From Anaeramoeba ignava BMAN (lineage: Eukaryota; Protista; Anaeramoebae): a stretch of DNA of 64,000 bases. The notes under the pieces are model-generated. The model did no database searches, was not told where the DNA came from, and worked only from the letters and a program-made list of their open reading frames with translations. Positions 11,049-32,081 of this stretch are shown one piece after another (position 1 is the stretch's first letter; every line of letters starts with the position of its first letter). The stretch is from positions 186,001-250,000 of the forward strand of contig JAPDFW010000093.1 in the NCBI GenBank assembly GCA_028826165.1. Direction: 5' to 3'. The translations under genes and the position numbers were made by a program.

Positions 11049-11143
11049 AAAAGAAAAAGAAATTTAAAACTGAAGTTGAAAGATTAACAAACAGACTTAA
11101 AATGGTTGAATTTGAAAAAGAAAATTTAAAGAAATTAATGTAA
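11049..11143 (+). pseudogene. Orphan 3' fragment of the PAS-coiled-coil family (KKKKFKTEVERLTNRLKMVEFEKENLKKLM*)
   Basis: Matches the array C-terminus. The following ~310 bp (to 11455) nearly duplicates 13842-14152. No upstream exons are present. Confidence 0.85.
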
Positions 11144-11749
11144 ATTGATTTTGTTCCACTTTTTTTTAAATCAATTCCAAAAATCAATTCCAAATTTTCT
11201 CTAATAAAATGGTTTGATTTTTAATTTTTTGATTAAATAATTTTCCAAAAAATTAAAAGGAGAAAAACAAATTTTCGCAAATTTTTTTTTTAATAATTCA
11301 ATAAAAATGTTGGATTTTATTTCTTTAAGAGATAAATCAAGGAATTAAAAGAGAAATAATTTTTTAAACATTTTTTAAATTAACTTTAAATAACATTAAT
11401 TAAATTTCTTTATTCTTTTTTTATTCTTTTTTTCTTTATTAAAATGATCATTGTGTTCTTTGATATTATGAAATGAAGTTTGGTTTGTTTAATTTATTAT
11501 TATTAATTTTATTCCTTTTTTTATTTTTATTTTTTATTTTATTTTTTTTGGATTTTTTGTTTTAAAAATAAAAGCGATCGATCGCAATTAAAATTTAATT
11601 TTAATTTTTAATTTTAATTTTAATTTTAAATTTAATTTATTTTTTTAATTAAAAAAAGAAGACAAAAATTTTTTTCTTTCTTAATCACTTTTTTCTTTTT
11701 CTTTTTTTTTTGGTTTGATATTTTTTTTTTATTATTAGAAAATTGAAAA

Positions 11750-13841
11750 ATGGGAAATGCAAACAATATTAAACACAAAATTACAAAAGCATCAATAAAG
11801 AAATATAGAAAAAAAATCTATTCATCTCAAGATGCAATTGCAGTTGTATCCCCAGAAAAGGGGTATATTGAAGCAAATGATGCTGCTGTAAAGCTATTTG
11901 AAGCTTCTTCAAAAGAAGAGTTGTTTAAACATCGCCCAGATACTCTAAGTCCTCAGTTTCAGGCTCATTTAGGCAAATCTTCTCATGAAGTTATGATGGA
12001 AGTTGTCCAAAAAGCTTTTCAGTAAAAAAATAATAAATAAAAATAAAAAATAAAATAATTTTCTTTGATCAAAAACAAAAACAACAAAAACCAAAACCAA
12101 AAACAAAAAACAAAAACAAAAACATTTGACTTTTTTATATTTTAAATTTGATCGTGCTTACTTTTTTTATTTTTTCATTATTAGATCTGAAGATGGTTAT
12201 GCTGATTTAATTTTTGAACATATTAGTTTAAAAGGAAATCATTTTTTTGCTCATGTTTGGATCACTGTAATTTATTTTTATTATTATTTTCATTTAATCA
12301 ATTTATTTTAATTAATTTCTTTCAATTTATTAAGCCAATTAATTTAGGTGGACAAGTTGGTAAATTCTTTGATTTAAAATACTTTTTTTTTTTGGATTTT
12401 CCAAATTTAATATTTAATAATCAATATTCAATATTCAATATTTAATAATTAATAATCAATATTTAATAATTAATATTTAATAATCAATAATTAATATTCA
12501 ATATTTAATAATCAATATTTAATAATTAATAATTAATATTTAATATTCAATAATCAATAATCAATAATTAATAATCAATATTTAATAATTAATAATAAAT
12601 ATTAAATAATCAATAATCAATATTCAATAATCAATAATAAATATTAAATATTCAATAATCAATAATCAATATTCAATATTTAATAATTAATATTTAATAA
12701 TTAATAATTAATAATCAATAATCAATAATCAATATTCAATATTTAATAATTAATAATTAATATTTAATATTCAATATTTAATATTTAATATTTAATAATT
12801 AATAATCAATAATCAATAATCAATATTTAATATTCAATATTCAATAATCAATAATTAATATTTAATATTCAATAATTAATATTTAATATTCAATATTCAA
12901 TAATTTAATATTCAATAATCAATATTCAATATTTAATAATCAATATTTAATATTTAATCAATAATCAATATTTAATAATCAATATTTAATATTTAATAAT
13001 CAATATTTAATATTTAATAATCAATAATCAATATTTAATATTTAATATTTAATATTTAATATTTAATATTTAATATTTAATATTTAATAATCAATAATCA
13101 ATATTCAATAATCAATAATAAATATTCAATAATCAATAATTAATATTCAATATTTAATATTTAATAATCAATATTAAATAATCAATAATAAATATTAAAT
13201 AATCAATAATCAATATTTAATATTTAATAATTAATAATCAATAATTAATATTTAATAATCAATATTCAATATTTAATAATTAATATTTAATATTCAATTT
13301 TTAATAAAAAGCTGCACAAGGAGTTATTAAAAAAGTCCCAAATCCAAATTCAGCTGAAAAAAAGATTGAATCAACAACTGATGTAGATACCTCACTTCTT
13401 AAACCAAAATTTGATGATGAAAGTAGTGATACATTATTTGATTCTCAAAGTGAAACAAATTTAAAATCAGAAAAGCAAACTTCAAATGGAGTATGGACAA
13501 AAGATAATTTAGATAAAGAAATCCAAAGACTTGATAAAGAATTGGAAAAAGGAATGAAAGAAAAAACAAGATTAGAAAGAATTAAATTCAAAGTTTTGGA
13601 AAAACAATTAAATGAAAAAATTCAAGAAAATACTCAACTTAAAAATGAAATTCTTGTTATTCAACAAATACTTGATGAAATGAAGAAATCTAATAATGAA
13701 AATGAAACTGAATCACAATTTCAAGATAAAATTGAAAGAATAAAAGAAAAGAAAAAGAAATATAAAACTGAAGTTGAAAGATTAACAAACAGACTTAAAA
13801 TGGTTGAATTTGAAAAAGAAAATTTAAAGAAATTGATGTGA
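11750..13841 (+). CDS. PAS-domain + coiled-coil protein, copy 1 (exons 11750-12021, 12185-12266, 12335-12359, 13312-13841)
   Basis: Spliced product DAIAVVSPEKGYIEANDAAVKLFEASSKEELFKHRPDTLSPQFQ..DLIFEHISLKGNHFFAHVWITPINLGGQVAAQGVIKKV fits the PAS/PAC pattern. All junctions are GT..AG and keep frame. N-terminus is MGNANN. Confidence 0.85.
12410..13300. repeat. Intronic heptamer satellite (CAATATT/TAATATT/CAATAAT)n; a similar array lies at ~15310-16270
   Basis: Directly visible in intron 3 of PAS copies 1 and 2. Confidence 0.95.
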
Positions 13842-28926: not shown

Positions 28927-29268
28927 ATTGATTTTGTTCCACTTTTTTTTTTTTTGAAATCAATTTCTAATTCAAAAATTTCTTTTTGTTTTTTTTAAAA
29001 AAAAATGAAAATTTTTTCACAAAATTTGATTTAAAATTTATTTTTGATTTATTTTTGATTATTTTTGATTATTTTTAAAAAAAAAGAAATGAAAAAAATA
29101 AGTAAGAGAATATTTATAAAATTTTAATCAAAAAAAAATGCGAAAATATTTTTAATTTTTAAATAAAAAAAAAAGAAGAAAAAAATAATTTTTCCATTTT
29201 AAGATCATTTTTTTTCTTACATTTTTTTCCTCTAATTCTATTTTTATTTTTTAAATAAAATAACAAAA

Positions 29269-32081
29269 ATGGGAAATGCAAATAATGTGAAACATAAAGT
29301 AACAAAATTTCAGTTAAAAAAATACAGAAAGAAAATATATTCATCACCAGATGCAGTAGTAGTAGCATCACCAGAAAGGGGGTTTATTGAAGTAAATGAT
29401 CAGGCTGTTAAACTATTTGAAGCTTCTTCAAGAGAAGAATTATTGAAATTTGGACCTGATGTTCTAAGCCCAAAATTTCAATCACATGTAAACAAAACTA
29501 CTCAAGAAGTTATTATGGAAACTTGGAAAAAAAGTGTTGAGTAAGTTTTTCTTTTTTGTGGAAAATTTAATTTTCTTTTTGATCGTTTGTTTGATTTATT
29601 ATTATTTTGTTTTTTGATTTTTTTCATTTATTCGGTTTTTTTTCCTCTTTCTTTTCTTAATTTAAAAAGATCTGAACAAGGTTATTCTGATTTGATCTTT
29701 GAAAATATTAGTATCAAAGGAAACCATTTTTTTGTTCATGTTTGGGTTACTGTAATTATTATTTAAAAAAAAAACTTTCCACATTTTTTTTTAATTAATT
29801 TATATTTTTTTTAATTTATTTTTAATTTATTTTTTCTTTTTAAAAGCCAATTATTTTCTTAGGGAAATTGGGTATAATTTTATTTTAAATTTAAATTTGA
29901 ATTTGATCTTGTATTTTAAATTGAATTTCAAATTAAATTTCAAATTAAATTTCAAATTTTGATTTGTGAATTTGATGACTGTTTAAAAAAAAACTCACAA
30001 TTCAAAAAGTCAAAACACGTGTTAAAAAATGGGAAAAGAGCAAAATCAATAAATTAATAAATCAATCTTAAAATCAATCAATCAATAAATCAATCAATAA
30101 ATCAATAAATCAATAAATCAATCAATAAATCAATAAATCAATAAATAAATCAATTAATTAATTAATAAATCAATCAATAAATCAATCAATAAATCAATAA
30201 ATAAATCAATAAATAAATTAAAAATCAATAAAAATCAGCCAAATCAATCACAAATTAATAAATAAATAAATAAATCAATAAATCAATAAAGCCAAATCAA
30301 TAAATTGCAAATAAAAAAATCAATCTAAATCAATCAATAATAAAATAAATTAATAAATCAATCTTGGGTAAAATCAATCAATAAATCAATCAATAAATCA
30401 ATAAATCAAATCAATAAATAAATCAATCCAAAATTAATAAATCAATCTTAAAATCAATAACCTTTAAAATCACCAATCAATAAATCAATCAATAAATCAA
30501 CCTTCAATCACCAATAAATCAGCCAAATCAATAAATCAATAAATCAATAAATTAATAAATCAATAAATCAATAAATCAATAAATTAATCAATAAATTAAA
30601 TAAAAATCAAGCAAAAATACCAATGTCAAAATAAAATCAAATCAAAACCAATTGGCCAAATTCAAATAAATCACCACCCAAATAAATAAATCAAATAAAT
30701 CCACCAAACCAATAAATCAGCCAATAAATAAATCAATCACAAATAAATCAACCAAATAAATAAAAAAAAACCAATAAATTGGCCAAAAATAAATAAAAGA
30801 AATAAATTAAATGGCCAAATAAATAACCAAACCAAATCAAATAAATTGGCCAAATCACCAAAATATCAATAAAATTAATAAAATAAATGGCTCCACAAAT
30901 AAATAAATCAATAAATAATCAAACAAATCACCAAATATAAATAAAATCAATGAAATCAAATAAAATAAACAAATCCAATCAAAATCAAAATAAATTAAAC
31001 AAATAAATACTAATAAAAAATAAATCAAATCAAATTAACAAATCAATAAATAAATTCAAATAAATCAACAAATAAAATAAATCAATAAATTGGCCAAATA
31101 ATAATCAAATAATAAATCAATCACAATAAATAAATAAAATAATAAATCAACAATCAACAAATCAATAAATCAATAAATCAATAAATAAATGTAATCAATA
31201 AATAATCAATCAATCATCCAATTAAAATCAATCAATCAACAAATCAATCAATCAATCAATCAATCAATCAATCAAATCAATCAATCAATCAATCAATCAA
31301 TCAATCAATCAATCAATCAATCAATCAATCAATCAATCAAATCAATCAATCAATCAATCAATCAATCAATCAATCAATAAATCAATCAATCTTAAAATAA
31401 ATAAATAAATGAATTAAAAAATCATTTCCAAATTAATTTCTTAATAAATTAAAAAATTAATTTCCAAAATAAATAGTTTCTCAAGCTGTTATTAAAAAAA
31501 TAGACAATCCAATTACTCTAGAACACAAAACAGAAGATCCAACTGAAGTAGATAGTTCATTGATTAAACCCAGATTTGATGATGAAAGTAGTGATTCTTA
31601 TATTGACACACAAAGTGAACCAAATACAAAATCAGAAAAACAAAATACAAAATCAGAAAAACAAAATTCAAACTCAGAAAAACAAAATTCAAACTCAGAA
31701 AAACAACCTCCAAAACAAACTTCAAATGGAATATGGTCAAAAGATAATTTAGATAAAGAAATTCTAAAACTTGATAAAGAAATAGAGAGAGCAACAAAAG
31801 AAAAAACAAGATTAGAAAGAATTAAATTCAAAGTTTTGGAAAAACAATTAAATGAAAAAACTCAAGAAAATACTCAACTTAAAAATGAAATTTTTGTTCT
31901 TCAACAATTACTTGAAGAAATGAAGAAATCTAATAATGAAAATGAATCTGAATCTCAACTTCAAGAAGAAATTGAAAGAATAAAAAAGAAGAAAAAGAAA
32001 TTTAAAACTGAAGTTGAAAGATTAACAAACAGACTTAAAATGGTTGAATTTGAAAAAGAAAATTTAAAGAAATTAATGTGA
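29269..32081 (+). CDS. PAS-coiled-coil copy 8 (intron 3 expanded, 29872-31476)
   Basis: Same four-exon structure; repeated SEKQN units in the linker. Confidence 0.85.
30045..31410. repeat. Intronic (AATC)n/(AATAAATC)n satellite with a degenerate, possibly low-quality, middle section
   Basis: Directly visible in intron 3 of PAS copy 8. Confidence 0.9.

Follow-up and report, generated by a model that had tools for sequence, protein, structure and literature searches.

A tandem array of PAS and coiled-coil genes in Anaeramoeba ignava is one branch of a large family of candidate sensors

In a 64,000-nucleotide stretch of contig 94 of the 42.8-Mb Anaeramoeba ignava genome (the window; all gene positions are window coordinates), eight genes lie in tandem on the plus strand. 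In their proteins, Gly2 is followed by a single complete PAS/PAC domain, then by a disordered linker and a coiled coil. With about a tenth of the members, the array forms one branch of a family of some 90 genes, in which a known sensor domain has taken on a new architecture and expanded within this lineage. An initial annotation, made from the sequence alone, had flagged the array as a candidate undescribed chemosensory repertoire. We found no paper describing the family or the architecture in the searchable literature, and in those parts of the genome paper and its supplements that were available to us, PAS is mentioned only for symbiont genes. Our preferred reading, held tentatively and at a little less than an even chance, is that the array proteins are lipid-anchored ligand sensors acting via coiled-coil partners, possibly relatives that bear an RGS domain; the binding and the partner are what we infer.

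Gene models and transcripts

The initial annotation predicted that splicing four exons would yield eight paralogs of about 300 amino acids (aa). All eight ATG-Gly starts, the exon sizes, and the GT..AG borders were found where it had placed them, with the broken copy 2 as the exception, and all six helix-F strings that it had quoted for the eight copies were present. Exon 1 measures 272 nucleotides (nt; 287 in copy 2 and 269 in copy 7) and closes at a phase-2 GT about 90 codons in. Next come exon 2 (82 nt), the microexon (25 nt), and the final exon (527 to 641 nt). In seven of the eight copies (1 and 3 to 8), the exon lengths total a multiple of three and the frames are open over 301 to 339 aa. 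The NCBI models of copies 1, 3, 4, 5, and 7 agree in length with these exon models. Over residues 1 to 207, a protein from the EukProt transcriptome (P0002) is identical to copy 1 and crosses all three junctions, which confirms for this copy that exon 1 is joined to exon 4. The tail of P0002 is a mosaic that ends as the sequence of a paralog on contig 1.

Copy 2 has a microexon without a usable donor and a 1-nt deletion near 16495, and it is either a pseudogene or an assembly error. Because Leu208 of P0002 occurs only in copy 2, eight codons past an intact frame at the deletion site, there is a weak hint of an assembly error. In copy 8, intron 3 (30050 to 31400) contains a repeat that decays into irregular sequence resembling unpolished long-read consensus; assembly errors around such introns are plausible. 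A transcript isoform of copy 3 (P0130, 17365 to 17664) runs into intron 1 past a weak donor, GTTTGT, and yields a protein of 99 aa that holds only half of the PAS domain.

Current NCBI labels of the family genes (A-type inclusion protein, ELKS, centrosomal protein, and Vps37a) are mistaken and stem from coiled-coil noise.

The PAS domain and its relatives

The claim of one complete PAS domain per protein was borne out by structure prediction. An AlphaFold2 model of residues 1 to 140 had a predicted local distance difference test score of 90, with strands at residues 29 to 34, 38 to 42, 97 to 104, 110 to 122, and 125 to 135. The model has the five-stranded antiparallel sheet and helices C to F in PAS order that define the PAS clan (CL0183). 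Foldseek matched it to FixL, NifL, and LOV at a probability of 1.0 (E values of about 4e-7 to 2e-6; template modeling scores of about 0.6 to 0.67). In Pfam, PAS_8 was above the cutoff for exon 1 of copy 2 and PAS was above it for P0135, a family member on contig 2; the others scored 13 to 22 bits, below the cutoff.

Membership in two cofactor-binding classes was considered and rejected. Heme-binding PAS domains (FixL and DosP) were set aside because residues 78 to 91 hold no conserved helix-F His and His73 lies in an inserted loop. LOV photoreceptors were set aside because the adduct-Cys position of Asn-Cys-Arg-Phe-Leu is an invariant Pro63.

We then compared the domain with 1.8 billion representative sequences by a profile search, in which the best 150 matches, mostly multi-PAS proteins, were listed. 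After the family members, the matches listed were prokaryotic PAS domains of multi-PAS histidine kinases with a Ser-Pro-x-x-Gln insertion after helix E. The closest listed sequences from outside the genome were prokaryotic PAS domains with 28 to 39% identity and up to 75 bits; closer eukaryotic relatives could lie below the best 150. The insertion is common to the prokaryotic relatives and the Anaeramoeba family, and Asn43 and Gln71 are invariant. From the prokaryotic motif SPxxQPDG, the family retains Ser-Pro-x-x-Gln and has replaced Asp-Gly. A strand-G Phe-x-Trp-x-His motif is present in older family members and eroded in the array. Domains with the SPxxQPDG motif scored a median of 48 bits, versus 19 for other PAS domains, and reciprocal profiles favored the motif group in only 11 of 14 cases. 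The 14 Anaeramoeba PAS domains tested formed one clade (100/100) on a long stem, in a tree that leaves the attachment to prokaryotic PAS open. The family PAS domain appears to be of prokaryotic type and of one origin. This kinship fits the general bacterial origin of eukaryotic PAS domains, which have repeatedly come from bacteria and are 35 to 48% identical to bacterial domains (PMC10468136).

A domain search of the A. ignava genome gave no HisKA (histidine kinase) match. Word-index protein searches matched members from A. ignava and, beyond these, no more than a few PAS proteins of prokaryotes, but one of the searches missed most known members, and such searches are too insensitive to show that the family is absent from A. 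flamelloides or other eukaryotes. The best PDB match of the PAS subfamily (E value, 2e-10) is without the insertion, and we found no solved close relative there. We know of no ligand for the prokaryotic SPxxQPDG-type subfamily.

Variation at the ligand pocket

The initial annotation placed the divergence of the copies in the ligand pocket. We assigned inward and outward strand positions from the LOV2 strand register, with conserved residues as anchor points; the choice of positions was made final once the column table had been inspected. Strand alternation leaves little freedom in choosing the inward set, and DosP alignments put known distal-pocket residues on it. Within the array, the proportion of pairs differing was 0.63 at inward positions versus 0.26 at outward positions (permutation P = 0.0001). 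The wider, older family showed the same bias (0.70 versus 0.48; P = 0.009), and the prokaryotic relatives showed the opposite trend (0.49 inward versus 0.64 outward). Variation is thus enriched at pocket-facing positions, and this claim stood. The ratio of nonsynonymous to synonymous substitution rates (dN/dS) gave no demonstration of diversifying selection: in the array it was 0.66 to 0.68 for pocket codons, versus 0.19 for the outer face. A dN/dS of 1.37 was obtained for six helix-F codons that were picked after the data had been viewed. The data are compatible with either diversifying selection or relaxed constraint.

The N terminus

Gly2 and the phase-2 intron near the same codon (about codon 90) were found in all 30 exon-1 copies read directly, despite 25 to 35% identity between subfamilies. 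Residue 3 is Asn in 28 of 35 family members, and Gly2 with a permissive residue 3 makes an N-myristoylation motif. The genome contains two N-myristoyltransferase genes. This enzyme prefers Ser or Thr at residue 6, which is Ser or Thr in 15 of the 35 members and Asn, Gln, or His in the array copies. The N-terminal basic helix aligns with the A'-alpha helix of prokaryotic PAS domains; the net charge of residues 8 to 25 is +4 to +9 in the family (about +7), versus a mean of −0.2 in the prokaryotic relatives. Such a charge shift fits a move of the A'-alpha helix toward membrane binding. The predicted membrane anchor made of Met-Gly-Asn and a basic helix keeps its conserved Gly2 and its candidate enzymes, but the basic helix belongs to the PAS module itself, as its ancestral A'-alpha helix turned basic.

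The C-terminal coil

In the full-length model, the PAS domain is followed by a low-confidence linker (residues 162 to 183 disordered) and by long helices at 190 to 257 and 260 to 301, the second of which has a clear heptad. As the initial annotation stated, no catalytic domain was present in the eight array proteins by Pfam scan or in the full-length model. Pfam coil matches to TACC, SPAM, and ATG16 were below the cutoff and were rejected as coiled-coil noise.

The C terminus had also been read as a constant output. Amino acid identity among array copies is 97% over the last 25 residues versus 44% in helix F. However, the DNA is alike as well. Among copies 1, 3, 4, 5, and 8, silent divergence in the same codon classes is 0.02 to 0.05 in the coil versus 0.22 to 0.38 in exon 1 (8- to 10-fold lower). 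The last 93 nt show 0 to 3 base differences among seven copies, and the 18 nt past the stop are identical in six. Because of this near-identity, the 3' ends must have been recently homogenized; unequal crossing-over or gene conversion is the probable process. The remnant of a ninth copy, ahead of the array, also suggests homogenization; together with its 3' flank, it is identical to the end of copy 1 (13745 to 14166) at 406 of 424 positions (96%). Protein constraint acts on the coil too, since the old contig-1 paralog, which branches elsewhere in the exon-1 tree and is only about 29% identical in its PAS domain, has a coil 53% identical to that of the array and keeps the coil motif. The constancy of the C terminus is thus partly protein constraint and partly DNA homogenization.

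The genome-wide family and its output domains

A profile of exon 1 gave at least 93 matches across the A. ignava genome, several of them in other tandem runs. The array had been presented as the repertoire itself; this does not hold, since it makes up about a tenth of the family and other members do have downstream output domains. By position downstream on the same strand, which is a call by adjacency that leaves about 25 members without an assigned C terminus, 39 exon-1 matches are followed by another helical C-domain, 9 by the array coil, 9 by RGS plus DUF547, 3 by DUF547 only (0.2 expected by chance), 7 by GAF, and 1 by SCAI. The helical C-domain is a conserved stretch of 130 residues with no Pfam match that occurs about 40 times in the genome, in every case but one with a PAS exon upstream; it showed no profile similarity to the array coil. 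Tandem runs of two to five family genes with this C-domain occur on contigs 63, 68, 92, and 147 (loci L031-L033, L035, and L039-L040). In the PAS-GAF genes, reading frames are shared between PAS and GAF, which supports the calls by adjacency, as does the PAS-RGS-DUF547 model P0135; these seven genes are the weakest exon-1 matches and may be a separate acquisition. On contig 90 (183.8 to 188.0 kb), a PAS exon 1 lies 2 kb upstream, on the same strand, of the sole SCAI match in the genome, a pairing called by adjacency.

The long forms would link the PAS domain to G-protein regulation. The NCBI model P0135 (549 to 555 kb of contig 2; locus L047) joins PAS, RGS, and DUF547 in one protein, and the architecture Met-Gly-PAS, coiled coil, RGS, DUF547 is found at this and eight other loci. 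Its RGS domain keeps the EN and N128-type GTPase-activating protein (GAP) residues, at positions numbered as in RGS4. We found no paper with RGS and DUF547 in one protein. RGS also stands beside DUF547 at several loci where no PAS exon was detected. By our own count of matches, the genome has about 45 G-alpha loci, and there are 71 RGS exon matches. None of the eight array proteins has an RGS domain in its chain.

A profile built from the coils of four long forms ranked the array coils first among about 900 sequences (12 to 19.5 bits). Shuffled controls scored at most 5.4 bits and other family coils at most 7 bits, and the array also exceeded reversed sequences. When the genome was searched with the long-form coil, the matches were swamped by low-complexity intron sequence. 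The ranking suggests, as a lead, that the short forms of the array may be truncated relatives of the long forms and could pair with them.

Array copies and neighborhood

The copies and the relic are listed in Table 1. The third intron of copy 4 (at 21142), copy 6 (24774), and copy 8 (30016) contains the sequence CACGTG. The window has five such sites against an expected 0.27, and 144 kb from other loci of the family has none; the sequence is possibly a shared regulatory site. A RasGEF-like gene, recognized by inspection, lies ahead of the array (7800 to 10877), and a gene with RGS, RhoGEF, and MORN matches follows within 10 kb (38418 to 41266). This neighborhood may be due to chance because signaling genes are common in the genome. 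A MULE transposase domain lies at 52336 to 53265.

Table 1. Array copies and the ninth-copy relic in window coordinates
Feature	Span	Strand	Exons	Product	Models, transcripts, or basis
Ninth-copy relic	11047..11141	+		Last 31 coiled-coil codons only	Duplicated 3' flank to ~11469
Copy 1	11750..13841	+	11750-12021, 12185-12266, 12335-12359, 13312-13841	302 aa	NCBI KAJ5070657 (P0005); transcript P0002 covers all junctions
Copy 2	14478..16802	+	14478-14764, 15053-15134, microexon acceptor 15213, last exon 16277-16802	Broken in assembly	NCBI P0004, a patched 250-aa model
Copy 3	17365..19968	+	17365-17636, 19168-19249, 19335-19359, 19439-19968	302 aa	NCBI P0156; transcript isoform P0130
Copy 4	20570..21769	+	20570-20841, 20898-20979, 21041-21065, 21243-21769	301 aa	NCBI P0003
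Copy 5	22329..23520	+	22329-22600, 22675-22756, 22834-22858, 22931-23520	322 aa	NCBI P0006
Copy 6	24116..27026	+	24116-24387, 24504-24585, 24685-24709, 26386-27026	339 aa, most divergent coil	Exon borders and open frame
Copy 7	27618..28926	+	27618-27886, 28022-28103, 28207-28231, 28352-28926	316 aa	NCBI P0001
Copy 8	29269..32081	+	29269-29540, 29670-29751, 29847-29871, 31477-32081	327 aa	Exon borders and open frame

Proposed mechanism and alternatives

We propose that the array arose by recent tandem expansion in one part of an Anaeramoeba family, about 90 genes in size, whose common element is a single PAS domain of prokaryotic type. Gly2 would be N-myristoylated, with the basic A'-alpha helix helping to hold the protein at the membrane, and the PAS pocket, given its fold and its pocket-biased variation, would take a small molecule or a cofactor, not the same one in every copy. 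Having no enzyme, an array protein would signal when its modeled C-terminal coil dimerizes with another protein. The likeliest partners may be other family members, especially the long PAS-coil-RGS-DUF547 forms with a related coil. Through such pairing, a bound ligand could control how G-alpha hydrolyzes GTP, which is the weakest step. The 3' ends would be kept alike by selection plus gene conversion or unequal crossing-over. Because sensors fused to RGS regulate self-activating G-alpha in Trichomonas, plants, and Naegleria (PMC9283941), ligand-gated GAP control is a reasonable model. In its boldest form, the proposal would make the whole family a repertoire of about 90 intracellular chemoreceptors, derived from a single PAS domain that was acquired laterally from a bacterial two-component system, myristoyl anchored, and wired to heterotrimeric G proteins. 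Short forms would heterodimerize via related coils with the long forms (PAS-RGS-DUF547), and many pockets would thereby control few GAPs. The family would then be a lipid-anchored, non-transmembrane counterpart of the G-protein-coupled receptor and seven-transmembrane (7TM)-RGS repertoires, possibly reading metabolites of bacterial symbionts. We regard that complete scenario as rather unlikely.

Several observations weigh against the sensor reading and its link to RGS. Residue 6 of the array proteins is not the Ser preferred by N-myristoyltransferase. The hhalign probability for the array coil against the RGS-form coil was 0.7%, one unrelated open reading frame scored 13 bits on the long-form coil profile, coiled coils in general are prone to match one another, and in the exon-1 tree the array does not cluster with RGS-type PAS domains. 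Additionally, the pocket dN/dS is below 1, and relaxed constraint on an empty pocket would also fit. The last point leads to an unlikely alternative, in which the proteins are membrane-anchored scaffolds or tethers whose PAS domain no longer binds a ligand but interacts with proteins or dimerizes via its conserved outer sheet face, the unused pocket drifts, and copies grow by neutral unequal crossing-over. An outer strand face under strong purifying selection next to a pocket nearer neutrality is what such a tether would show, as are the eroded Phe-x-Trp-x-His pocket motif of the prokaryotic relatives, the relic copy, the broken copy, and the homogenized 3' ends. However, pocket residues mostly stay hydrophobic and swap size (Gly/Trp and Ala/Ile) rather than changing at random, the inward bias extends across old subfamilies, and a 90-member family retains the fold, Gly2, and the intron position.

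Ligand sensing could also have an output independent of G proteins, with the coil binding one shared effector from outside the family, cytoskeletal or in trafficking, for example at the symbiosome membrane. We consider this doubtful: there is no candidate, and among the families tested, only RGS/DUF547, GAF, and SCAI lie downstream of family PAS exons. It would account for the last 25 residues being kept even in the old paralog with the divergent PAS domain and for the different, noncatalytic helical C-domain carried by most members, and membrane-trafficking families are expanded in Anaeramoeba (PMC11550330). Very unlikely, in our judgment, are heme or flavin sensors of gas or redox state (oxygen, sulfide, or hydrogen) like FixL, DosP, NifL, or LOV. 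Sensors of this kind head the matches by both structure and sequence, all array copies have His73, and the host is anaerobic, but the identities (12 to 22%) are those of any PAS domain, the helix-F His and the LOV Cys motif are lacking, and His73, in its inserted loop, is missing from about one-third of the family. A variable pocket also speaks against one shared cofactor.

The preferred reading makes the family a testable candidate for chemical sensing in free-living anaerobic protists and for the monitoring of sulfate-reducing symbionts by Anaeramoeba. Being small and soluble, the domains lend themselves to routine ligand screens and GAP assays. If the reading is right, a prokaryotic two-component sensor has been rewired to eukaryotic G-protein regulation in a genome without a detected histidine kinase. 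The family also points to a PAS subfamily that is widespread in prokaryotes.

Comparison with known systems

The prokaryotic SPxxQPDG PAS domains, which have a Phe-Glu-Trp-x-His strand and occur in multi-PAS histidine kinases and in STAS and MCP proteins (for example, in Planctomycetota and Omnitrophota metagenome-assembled genomes), have the insertion in common with the Anaeramoeba proteins, which differ in their single PAS domain, introns, Gly2, basic A'-alpha helix, and lack of a kinase. The heme PAS domains of FixL and DosP, the flavin adenine dinucleotide PAS domain of NifL, and short LOV proteins of the PpSB1-LOV type have the same fold. Short LOV proteins consist of an A'-alpha helix, a PAS domain, and a C-terminal coiled helix with no effector, a layout like that of the array proteins. 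In contrast to all of these, the array is without conserved cofactor residues and has a lipid-anchor motif, a long linker, a 110-residue coil, and an expanded, variable family.

7TM-RGS receptors of the AtRGS1 type, of which N. fowleri has 28 copies, read as an adaptive radiation (PMC9283941), fuse a sensor to an RGS domain that regulates G-alpha, as the long family members do. In the family, however, the sensor is a cytosolic PAS domain with a predicted lipid anchor instead of seven helices, and RGS is found only in longer members. Eukaryotes mostly have 10 to 30 PAS proteins, and the richest (Naegleria, Acanthamoeba, and Guillardia) have 50 to 80 (PMC10468136). Compared with such repertoires (bHLH-PAS, KCNH, PASK, and PDE8), the roughly 90 Anaeramoeba matches of apparently one origin exceed whole-proteome counts, and most are without a catalytic or DNA-binding output. 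Taken together, sequence and structural models would place the array proteins outside the heme-PAS, LOV, and 7TM-RGS families, as proteins that probably work like a stand-alone PAS sensor of the short LOV type with a lipid anchor added.

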